Below, in pieces: positions 17,762-31,149 of a stretch of DNA of 64,000 bases; positions within the stretch are counted from its first letter, which is position 1, and every line of letters starts with the position of its first letter. A program made the position numbers and the translations under genes. The DNA comes from Eutreptiella sp. 'Long Island Sound 2002'. Its lineage: Eukaryota > Protista > Euglenida. A model generated the notes under the pieces. The model was not told where the DNA came from. It did no database searches and was given only the letters and a program-made list of their open reading frames with translations. The DNA lies in assembly GCA_964036045.1 (NCBI GenBank), contig OZ038379.1:15376001-15440000 (forward strand). Reading direction: 5' to 3'.

Positions 17762-17974
17762 TCAACAGGACCCCCCAGCACCAGTGCCGCCATCTTCGCT
17801 GTGGCCGCGATCGGGCGCAGGAGCGGCATCGCCGATGCCGTAGAACTGCAAGGCATTGTCGTGAGCCGCCTGCAACACCTCTTCAACGGTAATACGCTTC
17901 AGTTGCGCCAGGGCCCGTGCGGTGAAAGGCAAATGGAACGGGGAGCTGAAGTCGTACTGCGACTGAGTGGGGCC
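17762..17974 (-). CDS. CCHC-TatD gene exon 9 (terminal)
   Basis: ccttgcag|GPTQSQYDFSSPFHLPFTARALAQLKRITVEEVLQAAHDNALQFYG...TGA; matches the TatD C-terminal helix pattern. Confidence 0.88.
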   Translation of the reverse strand, partial: GPTQSQYDFSSPFHLPFTARALAQLKRITVEEVLQAAHDNALQFYGIGDAAPAPDRGHSEDGGTGAGGSC

Positions 17975-20900
17975 CTGCAAGGCACGGCATGTGAATCCAT
18001 CGAAGGGGGTTGCATGCAGCAGGGGCAGGGGGATGGGGGGGGGGGATTGGCACAGTGGACTCTCCTCAACATATTACTGAGGGTGAGAACCAACACGACT
18101 CCCAAACCCATGGTGTAGCTTAGGATGCGTCGCGCGCGTGCAAAAATAAAGGATTCTCCGTTCATGAAAAGTGCTGTTTTACATTGAAAATTCTGTTTGT
18201 AATTCAGGGTATTATAATGGATGAACAATCTTTTTGTGCTCTGTTGTTGTTGCTTTTGTACCTGTTATGGTAAATGCAACCGTACCAATCCGGCACATAC
18301 CGCTGAGGCCAGCGCGGTCCAGTCAGTCGGTGGCACGTCGGCAAGGGCAAGGTGCAACGCTGTAGGGGTGGGCTATTCATCTACAAAGCAGGGGGCACGA
18401 GTTCCCAGAGCAGTGCGTACAACTGCAAAGGCAGGGCGCACCGCTGCAAGGGCAGGCAGAGTTCCACTTAAGAGGGGGATGGGGGGGGGGGGGAGCCCCC
18501 ACCTCCCTTCTGGTCCTGGAACTTTTCAAGGGCAATGGTTGGGCCAGCCAGGAAAGCGGTCCCCCAAGAACCGCCCGCTGCCATCCGGCGCCCCTACCCC
18601 CTCCCACCACTCCCCATCTTTGGAGAAGAGTGCGCCAATGGCACCACAAACACTCGTCGTGACGTGGGGCATATGTAGTGGAGATCCAAAGCCACCGTTT
18701 GCAGTTGTTCCTCCATTTTCATGGTCGGTTGCCTGCTGCATGCTCCTGCAACCCACAACGGGCGCCTGCGTGCCCTGGTGCTCCCACACACACATGGGGC
18801 GCCTGCCTGGGCTTTGCAATTCAACACCTGCTGACCGGGAAGGTGGCCTGTCCAGTGCTTGTTGGTGCCCTGCGTGTTCCCTGTGTAGAGGTGTTGCTCC
18901 TTGAAGCTTCGGGGGGTTTGGTTACGGCACCGCGATTCTTCTGCAATTTTCCGCAATTCTTTGCAATTGGATTTGACGGTCCCTGACCACAATCGTCCCC
19001 CTTTCCCCCGGCAGAAAGCAATTGCGGAAAAATTGCGGAAATTGCGGGAAATTGCGAAAAATGGCGGGAAACTGCAAAAAGTTGCGAAAAATGCGAACCT
19101 CAATCCCCCCCCCCTGTCTTTTCCCCGTCGCAGCCAACTCTCCGGTGCCTCACTGCAAAGCAACGAGGTCACGTGGCTCAGCTGTCATACAACATGATGC
19201 CTGAACAGCGGGTCCCAAGACTGCGCCTCGGGTGCAGCACAAGTGATAGGGCCAAGTGGAGCCTGCGGGGCGTACTACTTCTCCCTCTATCGACTCTCGG
19301 GCGCCTGAATGCAAAGCGCATACCCCCGTGGGTACCTCCAGTGGGGCATTGGACTCCAGGAGCACTTTGCGCAAAGGAATGTCAAAGGCGAGCTCGTGCA
19401 GGGGCTTGGCTTTGTCCGCGCGGAACGTGAGCGCCCCACTGAAACTTAAGTACAGATTGGGCAGCGCACGGGCCAACTTGAGCGGGAGCTCCGGATGCGT
19501 TCCCTGGTACCTGAGCCACGGGGGGGGGGGGGGGGTGCATGGCACCAAACCAGCACAGCCCGCGCCCAACAAACAGGACAGCGCTGCAAGGACTCAATAT
19601 TGGGACGGAGCTCGTCAAGGAAAGGGCATTGCGCACTAAAGACCATGCACCCCCACAGACAGCCGTGCCCTAACCCTCCGTCCTTGTTTGTATCCCAACA
19701 CAGTGACATGGGGACGGCTACATCATACGGGTATGTATTAGGCAGAGAGGGGGGCTTCAAATGGCCAGGTTGCATTGTCCGCATTAGGCTCTGGCTGCGC
19801 CTGCCCCACAGCTGTCATCGCCTTCTGTCCAGTGTGTCAGCGTCCTGCGCTTCTCCAGGCGCCATTGGATTGTGCATCCTGGCTCCACGCTGTTCTCTGG
19901 CCCTTTGGACTCCACTGGGTTATGCGTACATCCAGGTCAGCGGTCACTCCCTCCCTGAGGTGCTTCTGCTGGCCCCGTTCGGCCCCTCTCGGTTGGGCTG
20001 CGTTTGGTCCTTAGGTTGAGGGTAGGGGGGGGGGGGGTTGCCCGACCCCTCCTCCTCCACCCACAGCACCAGAAAAATACGTGGCACAATCGAAATCGTC
20101 CCAGCACAAAACAAGCATCAGCACAACAAAGACCATGGCTCCGTCGGGTCGGTGTGCAGCACCCATCGGCCAACAGACAATAGACAACAGACACAATGTG
20201 CTCCAGGACAGCCACCGACCTCTCCCAAGGGTGGGTTCTCTCAGGGACTGGAGTGGGTCCACAACATTTCTTACCCGAATGATGCATTAGAACAGTAGGA
20301 ATCGGGGGGGGTCTAGGAGGGGGGGGGGGGGCAGGGGGCAGGGACTTGCTTGAGCGGGGGGAGGGGGGGGAGGGGGTCCAGGGGGGAGGGGTCCCCCCCG
20401 TCGGAATGAAAATTAAAGCAAGTCCCTGGGGGGGGGGGGGCAGGGGGGGTTTCTCCCCCCCGTCCTGTGGGTGTCACCCGTTCCAACACATCCCTGCCCC
20501 AACAAACAGCACAGCCGGCACCCACAGCCCAAACAGCACCAGCATGACCCACCCCGACCCGGGACACCCAAGGCAGCACCGACCAAACAGCACCACATAA
20601 CCGCCACGGCACACCCGGCCCCAACACCGAAGCGAATCACACAAGCACCACCGGCACCTGGACGGCCCCCCGCGCACAAGCGCAGCCCCGCCGGCACCGA
20701 CACAGCCCACTCCAGCCCAACACAAGCGGGGCAACGGTACAACCAAAACCGGACCGGCACAGGTACAGGGCATGGGGTACGCACAACGCTTGGCGCACCC
20801 ATCGACACAGGCACCCCCTGCGGGTATACCGTGGCCTGGACCTACAACTCCAGCCCCTGGTCGCGCACCTGATCAGCACTCGGGAGTCCATGTCCACTAC

Positions 20901-23900
20901 GTCCGGGTCCGTCAGCAGTTCCAGTGTGCGTTTGTCGGCGTCCTTTGTGAAGAACACCACGGGCAACTGATGGGCCTTGGCGAAAGCCATCTGCTCCTTG
21001 CACACACGGACCTGCTCCTCCTCATCAACGGGGAGGCTGAAGTTCAGCCCACAAGACAGTCCCACCTGCCAAGGCCGGTGACAGCAACGCTGGGGATCAT
21101 GGCGACGTTTTTGGGACAGGGCTGCGAGGGCGAGTCCTTCCCAGCGGAACGCTGGGGTGGTGGGTGACCTCTTCACGAGTTTCTGGGGTAGGGGAAGGGG
21201 GGGGGAGGCCCCTGCAAGCCTTCGACAGAGTCTTCAAATTTGTCATTGTTTACTCCGTGCCCGCCGGTACACCCCAATCCATGCCACGGCGGTCTGTGCC
21301 GAAAAGCACAACCAGGGGCTGGACTCTCGCACCCCCCAACTTCAAGAAAGCACCGGCTGCTGGCGGCGTGTTGCGGCCGTTTACCTCTTCAGGGCATTAC
21401 CACAGGACCTGACATCGGATGCCCACAACTCGCCATCCGAGGAATGGCAACCGACGCGGACACCTGGAGGACCGCCGTTCCCAAAATCCGCCCGGGCCCG
21501 GGCCGCGTCCCCAAACACTCTTCCGCACTTGATCTGAATGCGAGTTACCCCCATGCACTAGCCCAGGGGACAAAGGTCCCCTCCCCTGCCACACCAGCCC
21601 ATGGGGGGTTCTGCAGTTCAGTTCTAGACACCAACCCCCGCGGCATGGGCGGGGGGGGTCCGGGAGGGGGGGGTAGTCGAAAAATTTTCTCCATTTTGGG
21701 GGCATTTTTGAATTCCCCGTTTCATTCTGAGCATTTTGAATATACACAAATGGAGTGAAATTTGGTTTTACCCCTCACAACGACTGAAAAACAGTACCAT
21801 ATTCCAACAGATGTACCTGTGAATCAGCAAAGGCCTCCCGGCCAGCAGAAGAAGGCATGTCGCACGGCATTCCCTAACTCATTGTGAGCATTTTGAATGT
21901 AAACAACTGGGGGGAAATGAAGGTTTTTGCAAATTTTCCAGGCTCAAAAAAATTTCCGGGCGCCGCTAGCGCCCAAATTGCCAGTTCTAACCAAGTGCTG
22001 ACTAGTGTGGGTTGGGGGGTCCAGAGGGGGGGTGGGGGGGTGGGGGGTGGGGGGGGGGGATTGGTGTCAGGCCTCACAGGTAAGCGCCCCCCATGCACCA
22101 GCCCGTACCTAAAGCCCTGCATCCATCAGACCACATACCACACGGTCCCCCCAGCGCTCAAGGCTGGACGTGAATTGCTCCTGGACCTCCACGTCCCATT
22201 CCATCGCACGTTCTGGGGGCAGGCCAATCAGGCCATAGACAGCGGCGGTGCTGTTGCCGGCAGTGTGGTCATTGGTCAACAAGCATTCTGCAGACACGCA
22301 ACGCATGCAGATGTTGCATGGCCGGAGAGAAGGGCAAATCTTACCATCAAAGCGCGCCAGGGCAATGCCGTGGTAAGGTAAAGAAGAAGCAGGCAGAGAG
22401 GGACAGAGGGAGCAAAGAAGGAAATGAAGAAGAAACGAGGAAGAAGAGGATGGGCAAGTGTATGCAACAGTGGACAGGTGCGACGAAGGAAAGGCTCTGT
22501 TAAAGAGGGGCAAGTGGGCACAGTAACAAAAACAGTGACAACAATAATACCAATAGAAGATACACTAGCAATGCCACCACAGTGCAATGCAATACAATGC
22601 AACTCAGAACAATATAATGCAGTGGAATACGGTGCAATAGAAAGCAATGCAATACAAGTCAATACAATGCAAGTGGACATAAAGCAGCCCACAACAACAC
22701 AACGCAAAACAGAACAATACAATGCAAGACAGTGCATTGATCCAAATCTGACTTCGCCGCCCACCCTCTCCACCCGTGCCTCCCTTTGTCCCTCCCTCCA
22801 TCCGTCCGTCCGTCCGTCCCTCAGTCACCTCCCTCCCTCCCTCGCAAGCCGCCAGCATTGCCATGCAGACACAGACCTGCCAAGGAATCCTGCCCAACGG
22901 GCGGGAAGTGGCTCACACACGTCTTCACGGTGCAGTTCTCTGCGGCGGTTCTGGGCAAGTGTTGCCGCGCAAAGCGTGTCAATGCGGTCCCCACGTGGTC
23001 GGCATGCCCCCCCACAGAGAAGCGCGACTTGGAGAACAGGCTCCGGAGGTTGGCGAAGCCGTCCACAAGCGGGACTGCGATCTGAGGCCATCTGCAGAGG
23101 CGGACATACGCGGCGTGCTGTGTTGCCACATGGACGGCGTGCAGAACCCTCGGATTCCCTGACTACCATGACTGTGCGTTTGTCCTACCCCGCCCCCCCC
23201 ATGTCCAGCCCCCCCCCAGGGTACACGGTTCCCCCCCACCCCGGGGGGAACCGTCACCAAGTGACGGTTCCCCCCCTGGGGGGGGGGGGGGAACCGTACA
23301 CCACTCCCGACCAGCCAATTCTAGTATAACCCAACTAAAAATTTTCTTCGGCGCCTTTGGCGCCTGTGATTTCCTATTGATTTCTTATTGTTCATGGGCC
23401 AAGTGACGGTTCCCCCCCTGGGGGGGGGGATGGACACGGGGGGGGGATGGACATGGGGGGGGGGGGGTAATTCCCCGGCCCCGGCCCCGCATTGCGCCGC
23501 TCTGTGCGGGCCCAGTCTGCCCCGCCAGTGTGCCCCCTGGAGCCCTGCGGCAGACCAGTACCTGCCCCCCGGGTCCAGCCCCACGCCAGGCGGGGCATAT
23601 TGCAGGCATACTCGAACTCCTCTTGGACTTCGGCGCGGGCCCCTCGGTCCTTTGCACGCAGCGACTCCGCGGTCGCTGTACACTCAGACTTGATGTGGCC
23701 TGACCAGAACGCGCAGCAGCCGCAGGACGCACCGTTGGTGGGGGTTATCGCGCACAGCGGGTGCGGCACGCAGTGGTCGGTGCGATGCCTTGCTGCATGG
23801 GCCCGAAAGGGGACCGTTGCACTGCGTTTGTGCACCGTGCGCCCCTTCGCAGGCCCAAAGGGAAGCAAATATCATTCATGTGGGGGGGGGGGGGTCATTG

Positions 23901-26900
23901 TAGTTCTACGGCGTGACGGGGGGGGGAGGCAAAAATGTCGTTTGTTGTTTTTTTGCCACACCCTCCAACAACGCAGAAATGCACCAAACCGTCTGATGAA
24001 AGATGAACACACAAATGGCAGAGTCCCGTTCTGGCCCCCACCCCCATCCCTGCTACTGGGGGCGTCCGAACAATACATGAGGTTAACACCTGCCATGGCA
24101 GGTGTTGGCAGGTGCAAGCACTTTTGTGGCTGGTGGTGGACGTGCATGCACACACACGTACACACAACCCCCTGCAGTCTCAGGGACGATCATTGATTCA
24201 CCAAATCATAGATTGGGCAACGATGAGCACTTGCTCACCTTTGTTGAGCACGGTGAAAATCACCAACCTCCGTCACACTAAAATGAAACGTTTAATGGCA
24301 TTTGTCAAAAAGGTGAATTTATTCGCTTTTATTTAAAGCAGAAAAACACTTCTTCCGCACTCGCCCAACTTAAGTGAGTAAAGATTCGATAAAACTGAGT
24401 AACTTACGTGACAACCTTCAATCATGAAAGTTGAACTTGAAACTGAGGTTTCAAATCTCACAAAACGTTTTTCTCAGTCGTACTGAGGAGCCATTGCGCA
24501 CGCCAACACAGAAGAGCTCACTACGCCAACAGGGTGCGGTGCAGGAAACACAATGTGCGGCAGTCACAGACAATAAATCGGAACCCCCATGCCCCAAAGT
24601 GCGTATCATTTGCACCTTCTTAAAGCACACCCATTGTAAGAAGCACCGTGTTATTGACGCGGTGCACTGCACCAAGGCCTCCCACTCACTTTTGGTGCCT
24701 GACACGGGAGCAGAAGCACATGGCGCACGCAATGAGACACCATACCCGACTTCCCACAAATGTGGCACTTCATCTTTGTGCGTCGGTCTGCCCTCCCTAT
24801 TGCAGCATGACGGACGTGACTTCGAACAGGCTGAAGGTCATGGTTTGGGGGGGCAGAAATGGACGACGGCACCAAGCAGGAGGGCAGCCATCAGCGCCGC
24901 AAGCACATCCATTGATGCGGATTTGCGTTCTTAGGGGGGGCAGCAGAGCGTATTGCGTCAATCAGGGGATTGCACAGAGGGTCCCTGCACCATGTTTCGA
25001 ACCCCCCGGGGCAAGCACAGCCGAAACAGCAGACAGACGGAGATCCTGTGCTCAGACAAAGCTGTGCGTGGGCACGGCCCACGAGCAGGCGGTTCCTAGG
25101 GAGTGGGACCCAGTACAGCAGTAGTGACTGAAAACTATGAGGACCACACGTGCGTCCCGGGCTTAGACAAGGCCGCGCTTCTACATGACCCACAGACAAC
25201 CGGCTCTTGGGGGATTTCGGCCCCATTGCAACGACATTGGGGGAATCCTTGCACTGCGTGCGCACTGCGTGCTACTTTTAGACTATGTTCTCCCCGAAGA
25301 GCCCCCAGGCACACCCCTTGGAAACGCCCTTAGAGTTAGGTGACCCAAACTGCCCCAGCTCAGGAAAGTTGCAAACCACCTTCCTTGCACATAACACCCA
25401 TCATGCACAACTAGAAAAGCCATGAACAGCGCATTGGTCGCCACCCTCAACAACACACAACTGTCTTTTTGTTCCATTGTCAACGAAGTACAAATTGAGA
25501 ATACGCAACTTGTGTGCACAACATGACACAGTTGCAGAATTAAAGAAATGTCACATTGTCATATGTGTGTGTGTCGATGCAATCCGTACAATATTGCAGT
25601 TCACACTTGTCACACATGGACATCTTTTCAGGGTCAGACTTGGTGCAACAAAGGGCACATACATCCCCATCATCACCCACAACATCCTCATCATCATTGT
25701 CCTCCTGTGTAGGTGCGGTCCATATGTGCGAGTACGTGTTCCCACGGACCATATGGAGGGTACCGTACCTGTCTGCGAATCAAAAATTGCTGCAAATGCA
25801 AGAGTGCACGCACGTACTCATGCAACTGGGTACTGGATCCCCTCCACGTGTTCCTTACGATGCCCCAGTGCCACATGCGTGCAAACAAGTGCTCAATACG
25901 TGCCCTGTAGAAACCATGAACACCATTGCACTCCTGTTGTCGCTCGGTCAAAGTCTTTCGACCGATAAATGGCCATGCCAAATGGAGGCGCCCCCTGTAT
26001 GCACCATCCATGGAGCCAATCTCATAATCCATATAATGCCCCTTGCTCCTTTTCGGCCCTTCGCAATCCCAAATGAGAACATCCGCCGATGTCCCGGGGG
26101 CCAACGGACAAATCCAAACGATATTACCAAGACTATCAATGGGGGTCGGAAATAGCCAAAAAAGATGCCCTGCATGCGCCTAAGGCTCCCTCCTAAAAAA
26201 GAGTGGATGTGGTGGAGATGAGCCAAAAAATGTGAAACGGGGTGGAAATGGGTGAAATCGGGTGAAAATCCAAAAATGCCATATCCCCAATGTGGAAAGC
26301 ATCAAAACCTACGCAACGGGGCAACAATGATGCCCCTAGTATCTCATAGCATGGGTCTCTAGTACGGCCATACGCCCAAATAGTTGCACTGCGCGCGCAC
26401 TGCGCTTAAGGCGCCCCCATTCACTCATAATCACACCAGAAACAAATGGAAAGCAAGTTGCAGTCTGAGGCACACGGTCATGATGCGCAGACACAACTGT
26501 GCACGCACATGACCCGCCCCCCCTTTCCCACGACAACCGGCTCACGAACATGTCATCTCACCTTATCGGACACAACAACTGCAGTCACGATAACGCTGGT
26601 CAAACGGGTCACCGTGCTGAGCCATGATCTGACGATGGCCGTCACGCACACCCAATGCTCAGTGCAACTTGTCCATAGGCGCCGGAACGCACCCTCACGA
26701 CATGTGCCCTGGATCCAACAAGACGCCGTCAGGCACCCCAAATCGGTCCCGCGTGCCGCGTGGCCGCTGGGCTGGCGTAAGAGGGGGGGCGGGGGGCACT
26801 ACCAGCTGAGCACCGGAATCCGCGGTGCCCCAACAGGCGTCACTCCACCGGCAGCAGTCTGCCGATTGCCATGCCAGCAACCGCGAACGACAGCCCGCGG

Positions 26901-28983
26901 AATGGGAACCGCCCCTCAGTGAGGGCGGTTCTTTTGAGCGAGGGGGGGAGGGGGGTGGGGGTTTTGAGGGTGGAGGGAGGGTGGGGGGGTTTGGCCAGCG
27001 CACCCCCCCCCCCCTTGTCTTTGCACCCCAAAATGTATCACAGCAGGTCTTTTTCCTTTTGGTGCTGGGTTTTGTTGTAAAAACAGATGATTCATTCCTG
27101 GAGGGTTGCTGTCAATTCATGGACATTTTCTGAACTTCCCGGAGCAGTGCACAACCCTTGCCCTAGCCCTGCGTATGCAATAGTGGCCCAGTAGAGACGG
27201 AAACAATCTTGTTCAAATGTACTGCATGCTGGTCAACGTGAAACTAATGTTGTTGTTCATTCTCATTTACTCACTCTCTGAACCAGAGCTGGAGTCAGAG
27301 CTAGAGCTACTGCCAGAGTCGGAGCTAGAGCTGGAGCTCGAGGAGTAGGTCATTGCAGGACCCTCATCTCCCTTGTCACAGGAGGTCATAGGAGCCAGCT
27401 CTTCTTCACTATCATCAGAACTACTATCCTGTGCCTCCAGGTCCATGTCAATCTTGCGTCGCTTCCCTTTGTCTTTGCGTGACTGCCGAATTACACGCAC
27501 CCTCCGTGTCTGTCTGTACCGCTGTACCACTTGACTGAAATCATACTCCGACCAAGAAATGGCATCTCTGGCAACCACCAGCAACTTTTCAAGTTGGTCC
27601 ATTCCTAAGGTACGGCGGTCATGGGAATTGATGCAGACATATGCAGACAGAGCACATACTTTGAACACAACACAACAGGCAAAGGGGGGGGGGGGCAGGA
27701 CAGTGCAGCATCCCAATGATTCTGTCCTCGGTGTCCTACACTGAATTTTCCCCTAACCAACACCTTCAAAAGCCGAAGCAGGAGGGGTTACCGGTAGGGG
27801 AGGGCCGAGAGTCTCGTAGGGGCATTATTTACAGCATTAAGGTAACCCTCTGCCTTGCTCTCCTGGGCTCCCCTGTGCCAAGGCATGCTCTCGGCCCCCC
27901 ACACCCGGCCAAAGAACCCCTTGGCCTACCTTGGCACGAGACCTGCAGACAGCGTCGTTTAACTGACAGGAAAGAAAATATATAAAAAAAAAGAGAAACA
28001 AAAGTTTTGGAAGTGACGCAGTCTCAGGCCCCCAATGCTCTGTTTAACGGAGGGTGGGAAGAGTCGAGAGCAAGGAGAGGGGGGTAGACAGCAGATTTGG
28101 TCCCCCATGATGAAGGGGGGACCCCCAGTAAGTATGCACTGTCACGAACCACAAAACTGAACTTTTGCAGAATTGGAATGGGGGGGGAGGGGGGGAGGGG
28201 GGGAGGGGGTTTGTGGGAGGGAGGGAGGGGGTTTTGCACCCCCTCCCCCCCCTCCCCTTGGTATTTAATTATTCTAAAGAAGCCCTGCCCCTCACGGTCC
28301 ACCTGCATTCTGCTGAGAGAGACCCTGCCACCCGCCGTCAGTGAACCGACAACCGCCGTCAATGGACTGCCAACTGCAATGGACTGAACCACCAACAGCA
28401 CGTCATTCCATCCTCCGCATGGAGACACCCCGCCACGATAACGCAGGACGCAATGCGCTGCTCTGCCCTACATCGACCCGCTGCCCTCGTTGTGGAGGCG
28501 TACCAATTGGGCACTGCTTGGAGGTGTGGCCGTGCTTGCCACATTTGAAGCAGTGCTGGTTTGACTGCTTTGGTCTGCCACGCTCTTCTTCCTCATCCTC
28601 TGGTTCGGCGTGCCGGTCTTCTGCAATGCAAAGAGGCAGAGCGATCGAGTGCGTAGCGAATGATGCACTGCACAATGCTACCCCGAGATGCATGGGATCG
28701 GGGGGGTACCCTCCCTTTCGGTGGCCCCAGCCCAGCTGCCCCGCCATTCTCCCTTCGCTGTCCCCGCCGCAACGGCATTTGTAACCGATGGCAAGGGCTC
28801 CGGGTCATTCCCGACCGCTCCCGATGGCGAAAAATGTCCCTCTTGCAGCAATGAACGATCGGTCCCTCTTCGTGCGCGAGAGCGCCTGTGCGCCACTCCA
28901 CCAGGGCGTGAGGATAGCCACCGCGTGGAAGCAAACACCGACAGCCGCGCTGCCGTCTCAGTGCCTTGGGGTGAAGACTGCAT
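17762..28983 (-). CDS. Tandem CCHC zinc-knuckle plus TatD-like (probably catalytically dead) protein; 9 exons, about 496 aa
   Basis: join(28710..28983, 28504..28620, 24746..24796, 23612..23699, 22877..23091, 22139..22287, 20869..21065, 19324..19510, 17762..17974) = 1491 nt. All introns are GT-AG with matching phases (1,1,1,2,1,0,2,0). Knuckles: CFKCGKHGHTSKQC and CHICGKSG|HIKSEC. TatD motifs: LVDGFANL, VYGLIGLPPERA, VGLSCGLNF, EQVRVCKEQMAFAKAHQLPVVFF, LYLSFSGALTF, IPLRKVLLESNAP, LAQLKRITVEEVLQAAHDNALQFY. Confidence 0.85.
18935..19095. repeat. Fold-back repeat built from AATTGCG(G/A)AA units (MITE-like), in TatD intron 8
   Basis: TTTTCCGCAATT near 18947 is the reverse complement of the tandem AATTGCGGAAAA units at 19020-19090. 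Confidence 0.7.
19324..19510 (-). CDS. CCHC-TatD gene exon 8
   Basis: ctcag|G YQGTHPELPLKLARALPNLYLSFSGALTF...IPLRKVLLESNAPLEVPTG|GTATGC. An alternative phase-0 donor GAG|GTACCC lies 12 nt upstream. Confidence 0.85.
20869..21065 (-). CDS. CCHC-TatD gene exon 7
   Basis: ttggcag|VGLSCGLNFSLPVDEEEQVRVCKEQMAFAKAHQLPVVFFTKDADKRTLELL...RVLI-AG|GTGCGC. Confidence 0.88.
22139..22287 (-). CDS. CCHC-TatD gene exon 6
   Basis: tctgcag|AA CLLTND...VYGLIGLPPERAMEWD...WGDRV|GTATGT. Confidence 0.85.
22530..22740. repeat. Degenerate (AATRC)n pentamer array in TatD intron 5
   Basis: Recurrent caatg/caata/aatgc units. Confidence 0.75.
22877..23091 (-). CDS. CCHC-TatD gene exon 5 (start of TatD barrel)
   Basis: ctctgcag|A WPQIAVPLVDGFANLRSLF...TVKTCVSHFPPVGQDSLA G|GTCTGT. 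Confidence 0.8.
23205..23470. mobile_element. Palindromic poly-G/C MITE-like insertion in TatD intron 4
   Basis: Hairpin GGAACCGTCAC-caa-GTGACGGTTCC at about 23247-23271. CCAAGTGACGGTTCCCCCCCTGGGGG recurs at about 23399. The family motif aaattttcttcggcgcctttggcgcc is at about 23338. Confidence 0.6.
23612..23699 (-). CDS. CCHC-TatD gene exon 4
   Basis: tcag|GC CAC ATC AAG TCT GAG TGT (HIKSEC)...EVQEEF-GA|GTATGC; phase 1 to phase 2. Confidence 0.85.
24746..24796 (-). CDS. CCHC-TatD gene exon 3 (first half of knuckle 2)
   Basis: 51 nt: aatag|GG AGG ... KMKCHICGKSG|GTATGG; completes a C-X2-C-X4-H-X4-C motif with the next exon. Confidence 0.85.
25540..26135 (-). pseudogene. Harbinger/IS5-like (DDE_Tnp_4) transposase C-terminal remnant with an acidic plus Cys-rich tail; one frameshift
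   Basis: DSLGNIVWICPLAPGTSADVLIW...DGAYRGRLHLAWPFIGRKTLTERQQECNGVHGFYRARIEHLFARMWHWGIVR matches the D-GY...PF...LT..Q..N..H...R..IE..F pattern. A frameshift near 25730 leads into HIWTAPTQEDNDDED...CALC...CDKC...C..C. Lies in TatD intron 2. Confidence 0.8.
27270..27660 (-). pseudogene. hAT-like transposase C-terminal (dimerisation domain) remnant with an acidic Ser-rich tail
   Basis: SAYVCINSHDRRTLGMDQLEKLLVVARD resembles the hAT S..N.I....R..L....L..LL motif. It is followed by a KGKRRK NLS-like segment and an S/D/E tail. Lies in TatD intron 2. Confidence 0.55.
28504..28620 (-). CDS. CCHC-TatD gene exon 2 (zinc knuckle 1)
   Basis: Acceptor ctctttgcattgcag|; EDRHAEPEDEEEERGRPKQSNQHCFKCGKHGHTSKQCPI; donor G|GTACGC. 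Confidence 0.85.
28710..28983 (-). CDS. CCHC-TatD gene exon 1 (putative N-terminus)
   Basis: MQSSPQGTETAARLSVFASTRWLSS...ATERE; phase-1 donor G|GTACCC; 89-nt intron to exon 2. The start codon is not independently confirmed. Confidence 0.6.
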
Positions 28984-31149
28984 GGTGCACGGGGCGTTCC
29001 CCCGTGGGTGACGCTTGCGGACATGCCAACAGCGTCCGTGCGGAAGTCAACGCATTATTCGGGACAGCCGGGGGGCGGTCTCAACAACTCCGACCCGGGG
29101 GCATTGCACTTGAGTGAGGGGGTTTGGGAAAAACGGGTGGGGGCAGCACCTACTCCAGCGCACTTCCAAAAATGCCTCATACACATCCCCCCCCCCGCCT
29201 CCCATGGCAATGGCAATGGCACAGGCAATGGCAAAGCAAACATCCAGCAGACGCTGCATGTCCGAGTTCCGGGACCCCTGCTGGCGTAAAGGCGGAAGGT
29301 GGGGAGGGGGGTGACCGGGGCAGCAATCCACAGCGCAACGGGGCATACCTTCCTCCCGCTTGGGCACCGTTTCCGGATCTGTCACAATGGGGGCCTCCGC
29401 ACGGTGCTTGCCTTTCCGCTTGCCTCTAGAAATCGCACGGCGGCAGCCAGACCGCTCCCCAACGCCATACTCCACAAGTACTCTTCACCCACATCACCTC
29501 GGTGCCCGATCCACTACCACTGCCTTCTTCCATGCCACTTTAGAAATCACCATCAACTGATGGGAGAGACTCTGCATCCGAAAGAGTCTTGGTGTGTGAA
29601 GCTGCACCGTGAACTTGGCGCAGAAATCCCACGAAAGCACAAAAATCCTAAAGTCTGAAAAAACACTGTTGAGCTGTAAAGTAGAATGTTCAAGTTGACC
29701 CCCCCCAACCGGAGGAAATTGCAAGGGCACAGGAATCGCACAGGCAGGGGGGGGGGGGGTACTTCCGGGTATGAAAAGTGTTTTGGGTATCAGAAAGAAA
29801 GTGGTGCGGGGAAAGGTAATTTGGTAGGTGCCCTCCCAAGTCCCTGTGACACTTGGTAAGAGGGAGGTGCACCAACGGTCCCAAATCTGCAAAACTGTCT
29901 TCAAACTGTTCTAGAAGACATCCAATCCATTCAGCCGCACGCTTTGGGCCAGGTTTTGGAGGCCCAGGTTGCTCCACAGGTTTCAAATCCCTGGGAATCC
30001 ACTTCTCCTCACGTATGCCGGTGCCGTCCTCTTTTGTCTGACGACAAACTTCAACGCAATATCACGTACGCAGATGACGAGCCCCGCAAAATTACAAGTG
30101 GCCAAGTGACCATTCCCCCCTCGTCCCAAAGAGGGGGGGGATTTCAAGGAAGGAGGGTCTCTGGCGTACAGGTTTTGCAGCATTAGTCATGGCTGAAAAG
30201 CTCATCAAACCACAGGGACGGGGGTTGCAGTGTCAAGCACAATTTCGTATGACTGGAACCCAGGCATTAGAACAGGCGTGATCCAGCTGCTCTGTCCAAG
30301 TATACGCAGCTCACAAACAAGTCGTCGCGCATCTTGCACGCCAAAAATAGCGGTTCAAAAAAAACAACAACAGTCAGACGGGGTCGCCGTGCTTGCCTGG
30401 GGGGTGGGGGGGCTCAGGCGCGCTCGCGTGAGCCCCCGGGATTCACAGTACCGAACCGACGGCACCGAATTCAATTACGGTGCCAAAACATGACGGTTCC
30501 TGCGGGTAGTGTGGCTTGGGCAGCGCGTAGCTCAAACGGATGCCAGGTCCAATTTACTGAAACGCGCGAGTCCACCCCGATAATCCGCCACTGGCTGTCT
30601 CCCTGCCAACTACGAGAGGGGCGTCTCTGTTGCATTGAGCTCACCTGACGCCTGAGACACAGCCACAGCAACTTACTTGGACGGCTTCACCGGACTCTCT
30701 TCGCCGCTGTCAATGCCCCCCTCAAGCTCTGCCGCAAGGTCCTTTGTCTTTCTTCGGCTCATCTTTCCAAAGAACTCCGAGGCATTGCTTCAAAGTCGTT
30801 TAGCGTGAAATACGACGGCGAAGCTGCAGAAGCCTCACAGCAACAAAAAGATCAACCGCTCCGAATCTTGACACATCCGGACACGGGGCTGCAAGCGATG
30901 CCAATGCGTGGGACACACTCTACACGGCAGAAGTGTATTACACATAAAACATCAGTACGGCACCCCAAGGACTCGGAAAACACTGAGGGAATGGTGTTGT
31001 TGAATGATGTTGTTGCACTGGGTGCCACCGCAGGGCACTGGCTCACAGCTCCAGGCTTTGACCCTCCCCCCCCCGCCCGTGTGTCTTGCAGCTGGAAGTC
31101 GGCGCCAAAGACTTTCCTAGAGCCCAACATGTGCACAGAGGCCCTCTGC

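Follow-up and report, generated by a model that had tools for sequence, protein, structure and literature searches.

Does a TatD-type nuclease barrel that lacks most of its metal ligands and is joined to two CCHC zinc knuckles still cut nucleic acids, or has it become part of a protein with a non-catalytic role? This question is raised by a locus of the euglenid Eutreptiella sp. 'Long Island Sound 2002', situated in a stretch of 64,000 nucleotides (contig OZ038379.1, positions 15,376,001 to 15,440,000; hereafter the window, whose numbering is used throughout). An earlier note, made from the letters of this stretch, had placed a nine-exon gene at 17762-28983 and proposed that it encodes a TatD-fold protein converted from a nuclease into a nucleic-acid-binding scaffold. 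The analysis described here identified the region 17762-30762 on the minus strand as a live ten-exon gene encoding a protein of 459 amino acids (aa), and no second copy of this gene was found in the 64-kb window. As a whole, the interpretation that the gene encodes an expressed fusion of a knuckle pair with a non-catalytic TatD barrel is assigned a probability of about 0.75.

The coding region runs on the minus strand from an ATG at 30762 to a TGA stop codon at 17764-17762, and all nine introns are of the GT-AG type. The gene model was refined from per-exon translations using a transcriptome-derived protein (UniRef100_A0A7S4LLN1) and an orthologue from another euglenid, Jenningsia sp. PLL12. 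It contains neither an internal stop codon nor a frameshift, and its spliced translation is identical, letter for letter, to A0A7S4LLN1 at all 459 residues. The latter is attributed to Eutreptiella gymnastica and bears just the public name 'CCHC-type domain-containing protein'; the protein sequence is public but uncharacterised. In the same 90% UniRef cluster is found a 115-aa peptide from the transcriptome MMETSP0811 (Eutreptiella braarudii in EukProt), which spans exons 1 to 5 including the splice within the second knuckle. All coding exons are carried by one spliced messenger RNA. The earlier note had named unspliced knuckle and TatD exons as an outcome that would speak against its proposal; instead, both sets of exons are present on one transcript, as A0A7S4LLN1 equals the ten-exon translation and the Jenningsia transcript has the same fusion. 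The junction that joins the knuckle part to the barrel lies between exons 5 and 6 (23612|23091), is in frame, follows the GT-AG rule and is the same in A0A7S4LLN1. An alternative junction (donor 23561, acceptor 23075) would also keep the frame, but the transcript protein uses 23612|23091.

Contigs of four public runs were compared with positions 22870-28869, whereas exons 6 to 10 are supported by their identity to A0A7S4LLN1. Within this interval, most of the RNA-run signal was found on intronic repeats and a single contig on an exon, and no contig from two estuary runs matched any exon. The exonic contig matches 28503-28622 (exon 3) with 0 mismatches and shows spliced flanks; it carries 219 unmatched letters upstream, the first 30 of which map to 29351-29380 at the end of exon 2. 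Because exon 3 is spliced to exon 2 in this contig, a first exon starting at ATG 28983, as assumed previously, is ruled out. The sequence in question (28621..28983) is situated inside intron 2 (29348-28621) and is not covered by any RNA contig, and the true start at 30762 lies two exons and 1.8 kb further upstream, beyond the range of the original model. Eight of the nine exons of that model appear to correspond to real exons, while its first exon was wrong. Its description of a live, in-frame gene with canonical splice sites was borne out by the GT-AG introns and the exact match to a transcript-derived protein. The apparently low expression (one short exon contig in four runs and none in the two estuary runs) and the failure of a protein search with exon 8 to return the full-length protein directly could suggest that the fusion is an artefact, produced by chimeric assembly of transcripts, or that the gene is a pseudogene in decay. 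This explanation is hardly credible, given the genomic in-frame junction at 23612|23091 that is reproduced in A0A7S4LLN1, the nine out of nine GT-AG introns in an uninterrupted frame and the presence of the same fusion in an independent transcript of another genus.

The encoded protein is composed of a charged N-terminal region (residues 1-77), two knuckles (78-91 and 104-117), a short acidic linker and a TatD-type TIM barrel (147-437). Both knuckles follow the pattern C-X2-C-X4-H-X4-C exactly and match Pfam zf-CCHC (PF00098) in two stretches with 36.7 bits (cutoff 20.8). The knuckle pair is strongly basic with a net charge of approximately +8. Matches of the knuckles in the PDB include HIV-1 NCp7 (E value ~2e-4) and, weakly, ZCCHC8, in both cases as motif-level similarity only. 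The barrel scores 80.7 bits against Pfam TatD_DNase (PF01026; cutoff 27, E value 1.5e-22), with residues 221-435 aligned to profile positions 48-253, and colinear matches to profile positions 92-147, 161-205 and 217-253 were also obtained when the exons were translated singly. The PDB matches to TatD proteins (best E value 3e-12) comprise S. aureus 2GZX, E. coli TatD 4PE8, human TATDN3 2Y1H and YcfH 1YIX. A profile of the two euglenid barrels was aligned by hhalign to the three E. coli TatD paralogues (TatD, YcfH and YjjV) with a probability of 98.7%. The TatD fold and the two CCHC knuckles proposed in the earlier note were thus recovered, and both families it had named for a HMMER comparison (PF01026 and PF00098) scored above cutoff.

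Sequence alignments to TatD start near residue 227, and the first third of the barrel is highly diverged and contains insertions. An ESM Atlas model of the exact protein (predicted template modelling (TM) score 0.65) superimposes over residues 147-437 on TatD hydrolases of 254-255 aa with 253 aligned residues and a TM of 0.90 by hit, both sides being predicted structures. This superposition indicates a complete barrel whose first residues are Pro147-Leu-Val-Asp150. An AlphaFold2 run on the Eutreptiella and Jenningsia sequences, hence on two sequences only, reached a mean predicted local distance difference test score of 39. Judged by sequence, the barrel is a TatD homologue, and fold and Pfam score place the protein in the TatD family, whereas the defining set of metal ligands excludes it from the TatD enzymes.

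In human TATDN1, metal A is held by Asn12 and Asp222 and metal B by His149 and His174, while Glu112 bridges both metals and its exchange in E112A abolishes activity; His77 contacts the phosphate and Arg119 inserts into DNA (PMC10085689). Strand 1 carries an HxH motif in class II TatD enzymes and a (G/A)xN motif in class I enzymes (PMC10085689). The corresponding positions were determined in E. coli TatD numbering from PDB, MAFFT, hhalign and motif alignments. In strand 1, Gly5 (or the first His of HxH) corresponds to Phe152 in Eutreptiella and Phe93 in Jenningsia, whereas the metal A ligand Asn7 (or the second His of HxH) is kept as Asn154 and Asn95, respectively. The phosphate-contacting His62 of the GxHP motif is replaced by Pro235 in Eutreptiella and Leu166 in Jenningsia, the bridging Glu91 by Ser265 or a one-residue gap and by Ala196, the DNA-inserting Arg98 by Leu272 and Glu203, and the metal B ligand His127 by Phe300 and Leu232. 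Further positions are not covered by the Jenningsia protein: in Eutreptiella, the second metal B ligand His152 is replaced by Ile326 and the metal A ligand Asp203 by Asn381, while Glu201, which is not a ligand, is kept as Glu379. Mutation of the TATDN1 counterpart of Glu379 has no effect (PMC10085689).

Consequently, no ligand is left in metal site B and a single Asn (N154) is kept in site A. In place of the ligand set of TatD enzymes, the protein exhibits F152/N154, S265 or a gap, F300, I326 and N381, with Asn as the sole possible ligand. All motifs on which the earlier note had relied are found in the protein (DGFAN 150-154, GLPP 233-236, GLSCGLNF 263-270, VVFFTK 297-302, VLIRYQG 324-330 and LESNAP 378-383), and alignment to E. 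coli TatD placed the replacements in the register it had indicated. Its conclusion that essentially all His, Glu and Asp ligands were lost holds for the bridging Glu, both metal B His residues, Asp203 and His62; however, it went too far with regard to N154, a normal class I ligand, and E379, which is kept. For strand 1, PLVDGFANL was set against FLVDSHCHL of YcfH and MFDIGVNL of E. coli TatD, and this register is taken as fixed because the Atlas structural alignment starts at residue 147.

Several points weigh against a dead barrel. The alignment of strand 1 relies on its motif and on where the Atlas alignment starts, not on a profile, and MAFFT, which was unreliable on fragments, placed it four residues off; this offset is regarded as an alignment failure. 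Only one orthologue is available, and it ends after the equivalent of exon 8, so that the positions of I326 and N381 are not covered. Furthermore, the His and Cys residues H172, H184, H201, H219, H293, C266 and C283 are invariant in both orthologues and could form part of a rebuilt metal site. Finally, the TATDN1 variants H149A, H174A and D222A show barely lower activity and E112Q even raises it (PMC10085689). As single ligand losses are tolerated in TATDN1, the case for a dead barrel rests on the combined losses.

The same observations would fit a protein that is still an enzyme, namely a TatD variant that uses another set of residues and at most one metal and that may act on a different substrate. 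Single TATDN1 ligand mutants stay active, with E112Q being hyperactive (PMC10085689), conserved His and Cys residues are present, and pseudoenzymes with migrated catalytic residues are known (PMC10211241). Such an enzyme is nevertheless very unlikely. Of the five metal ligands, four have been exchanged at the same time, with Phe, Ile, and Ser or a gap at three of these positions, and the two that can be compared in Jenningsia are Leu and Ala. These replacements differ between the species (F/L and S/A), which indicates relaxed chemistry rather than a new catalytic set. In addition, NCBIfam scores remain far under all curated TatD cutoffs (TIGR00010, 77.2 versus 206; PRK10425, 53.5 versus 395; PRK10812, 38.8 versus 438).

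Support for a non-catalytic barrel that has been conserved comes from the Jenningsia protein, which was the one relative identified when exon 8 was compared by phmmer with 1.84 billion protein representatives. The sequence of 287 aa originates from a single-cell transcriptome of this heterotrophic euglenid (EukProt) and exhibits the same N-terminal architecture, with a short basic N-terminus and two CCHC knuckles followed by a TatD barrel that scores 28.4 bits on Pfam TatD_DNase (cutoff 27). The linker between the knuckles measures 12 residues in both species, six of which are identical. Identity between the barrels amounts to 39-43%, with 42% for the segment encoded by exon 6 (E value 1.6e-12), and the segments D-x-FAN, RF-x-RQHLP, AxEW, CG-x-x-F and LELLTDP are common to both. 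The homology ends exactly at the Eutreptiella exon 8/9 boundary, with residues 257-287 of the Jenningsia protein lying beyond it, which suggests that an intron at a conserved position has been retained in the Jenningsia contig.

The replacements are common to the two proteins in position and different in residue (Phe/Leu, Ser/Ala and Pro/Leu in Eutreptiella and Jenningsia, respectively), a pattern that fits sites freed of chemical constraint in an otherwise conserved protein. This provides qualitative evidence suggestive of purifying selection on a non-catalytic function. An enzyme fold without its catalytic residues is expressed and has been kept between two lineages, and the protein is quite likely a pseudoenzyme. 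Since the distant euglenid Jenningsia keeps the architecture, the linker and equivalent losses, the comparison speaks for a pseudoenzyme that is ancient and conserved, and against a gene in decay.

Other searches for relatives were less productive. The phmmer search with exon 8 additionally returned a prokaryote-style open reading frame (ORF) call on the same contig, which was the only return of a word search with this exon, but missed the full-length A0A7S4LLN1, apparently represented in the database by its N-terminal fragment; absences in these searches are therefore weak evidence. A word search with the Jenningsia protein returned itself only, and no contigs encoding this protein or A0A7S4LLN1 are on record. 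Metagenome scans with conserved peptides yielded no relatives, and ESM Atlas feature searches recovered ordinary TatD or amidohydrolase clusters only, none with knuckles, both being weak absences. In the paper library searched, no article was found that joins TatD with a CCHC or zinc knuckle, with Euglena or with the term pseudoenzyme.

With regard to function, the barrel would no longer hydrolyse nucleic acids or phosphodiesters, because hydrophobic residues occupy all of metal site B and a lone Asn is kept in site A. Knuckles of CNBP-type proteins and retroviral nucleocapsids bind single-stranded nucleic acid. By analogy within this family, the basic knuckle pair would bind single-stranded RNA or DNA; nucleic-acid binding by the knuckles is considered probable, and the chances for RNA rather than DNA as the target are about even. 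The dead barrel would then serve as a non-catalytic platform, which more probably docks a partner than provides a second site for nucleic acid. A docking role is favored because both metal sites, the His that contacts the phosphate and the counterpart of the DNA-inserting Arg (Leu272, and Glu in Jenningsia) have been lost.

A contrasting scenario is that the barrel still holds a nucleotide or the 3' end of a nucleic acid but does not cut it, so that the protein would bind with two modules, the knuckles and the old groove; this would correspond to the binding scaffold of the earlier note taken strictly. Around the strands that once formed the active site, the complete barrel has stayed well conserved (LELLTDP, CG(L/V)xF and a β7 segment resembling SFSGxxTFR), Asn154 and Glu379 are kept, and pseudonucleases of the RNase II type retain RNA binding after catalysis has been lost (PMC8097288). 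In TATDN1, however, the phosphate is held via two metals and His77 (PMC10085689), and both metal sites as well as this His are absent here. Moreover, the position of the DNA-inserting Arg is occupied by Leu or Glu, and the barrel is acidic with an isoelectric point of 5.8, although E. coli TatD is acidic too. Two-module binding is thus rather unlikely, and partner docking by a non-catalytic barrel is preferred.

A more far-reaching and decidedly unlikely extension of the docking model would be a euglenid-wide family in which the dead TatD barrel docks a partner enzyme and, together with the nucleocapsid-like knuckles, forms an adaptor or chaperone dedicated to an RNA process specific to the lineage, such as the handling of spliced-leader or intron-derived RNAs. 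Such a family would date back at least to the divergence of phototrophic euglenophytes from peranemid-type heterotrophs and, if real, would provide the first example of a TatD fold in a non-catalytic role.

The individual exons, all on the minus strand, distribute these elements as follows. Coding exon 1 (30677..30762, aa 1-29) contains the start codon at 30762-30760, encodes the basic N-terminus and ends at the donor GTAAGT; the MMETSP0811 peptide starts in this exon. A short upstream ORF of eight codons is located at 30759-30785 on the minus strand, with its TGA overlapping the ATG of the main reading frame (ATGA). Depending on the spliced-leader acceptor site, this ORF may lie within the mature 5' untranslated region. 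Exon 2 (29349..29425, aa 29-54), which harbors the RNA-contig end at 29351-29380 and is present in both transcriptome proteins, encodes a Lys/Arg-rich and then acidic segment. The acidic run and the first knuckle (78-91) are encoded by exon 3 (28504..28620, aa 55-93), which matches zf-CCHC with an E value of 6.4e-6 when translated alone. Exon 4 (24746..24796, aa 94-110) contributes the linker between the knuckles and the N-terminal half of knuckle 2; it is colinear with the Jenningsia protein, and its junction is read through by both transcriptome proteins (the MMETSP0811 peptide and A0A7S4LLN1). Knuckle 2 is interrupted by a GT-AG intron (24745-23700), and its second half is found in exon 5 (23612..23699, aa 111-139) together with the linker to the barrel, upstream of the donor GTATGC at 23611.

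The barrel begins in exon 6 (22877..23091, aa 140-211), which encodes strand 1 (D150, F152 and N154 at the DxHxH or (G/A)xN position) and the conserved RQHLP segment. Exon 7 (22139..22287, aa 212-261) contains GLPP in place of the GxHP motif, corresponding to the exchange of E. coli TatD His62 for Pro235. In exon 8 (20869..21065, aa 262-327; Pfam TatD profile positions 92-147), the segment LELLTDP is accompanied by S265 or a gap for Glu91, L272 for Arg98 and F300 for His127. Exon 9 (19324..19510, aa 327-389; profile positions 161-205) encodes the kept E379 and N381 for Asp203, with the codon of I326 for His152 situated in the junction region, and ends at 19324, three codons past LESNAPLE. The last barrel helices, a Gly/Asp-rich tail and the TGA stop codon are located in exon 10 (17762..17974, aa 390-459; profile positions 217-253).

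The introns of the gene harbor several repeats. Intron 5 contains an element of approximately 285 bp (23186-23469) with 32-nt terminal inverted repeats that are 94% complementary and with internal C/G-run palindromes. In a DNA-like run, its contig depth was approximately 1000 times that of the flanks, and it looks like a very high-copy miniature inverted-repeat transposable element. In intron 3, positions 25070-26470 constitute a very high-copy repeat, copies of which occur in RNA-run contigs at 95-99% identity; an ORF on its minus strand (25697-26104) shows a weak, below-cutoff match to DDE_Tnp_4 (PIF/Harbinger transposase). The same intron contains a minus-strand ORF of 149 aa at 27190-27716, which is rich in Ser, Asp and Glu and has no Pfam match. 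It is part of a repeated sequence that three RNA runs likewise contain, in contigs of 95-99% identity; one such contig, 2.4 kb in length, runs on into unrelated sequence. The ORF region could be an expressed repeat or a gene family nested in the intron. In intron 4, positions 24321-24471 and 24552-24702 are matched with 0 mismatches by two 151-nt contigs of an estuary metatranscriptome. DNA or unspliced RNA of the organism was therefore present in that estuary sample. Both these perfect intronic matches and the 459-residue identity to the Eutreptiella transcriptome protein speak for the assignment of the assembly to Eutreptiella, a marine or estuarine euglenophyte.

If the barrel is indeed non-catalytic, TatD would join those enzyme families that have given rise to non-catalytic binders. 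The protein is also a natural multiple-ligand mutant, a useful case given the surprising tolerance of TATDN1 for the loss of individual ligands, and a candidate lineage-specific nucleic-acid-binding factor of euglenids. Compared with the TatD nucleases of the same TIM-barrel family (E. coli TatD, YcfH and YjjV, human TATDN1-3 and S. aureus SAV0491), all eight strand motifs are recognisable and their order and spacing are kept, whereas the bridging Glu, both metal B His residues, the metal A Asp and the phosphate-contacting His are replaced. In addition, the protein carries approximately 146 extra N-terminal residues with the two CCHC knuckles, which are found in none of the characterised TatD proteins in the literature examined. 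The class signals are mixed: strand 1 shows the Asn of class I, yet the strand 7 segment resembles class II YcfH, the best-scoring model for the Jenningsia protein is that of E. coli TatD, and human TATDN1 is absent from the PDB matches.

Tandem CCHC modules, as in retroviral nucleocapsids, CNBP-type proteins and ZCCHC8, likewise comprise two canonical knuckles in a basic context. Here, however, they are separated by a 12-residue linker that is kept in two euglenids, and they stand ahead of a dead enzyme barrel instead of being part of Gag or of an RNA-surveillance adaptor. Within the Euglenozoa, the kinetoplastid editosome proteins KREPB4 and KREPB5 offer an analogy for a possible mode of action, as they combine a degenerate RNase III domain with a zinc finger and serve as structural partners. 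They differ in nuclease fold and finger type and show no sequence relationship to the protein described here. The closest concept is found in the fungal RNase II/Dis3-like pseudonucleases of the Ssd1 type, in which a 3'-5' exonuclease fold without catalytic residues has been kept as a nucleic-acid binder (PMC8097288). Their RNB fold is unrelated to the TIM barrel, and they bind via the old nuclease and cold-shock domains, whereas in the euglenid protein a separate knuckle module has been added and is predicted to provide the binding (PMC8097288 for Ssd1).

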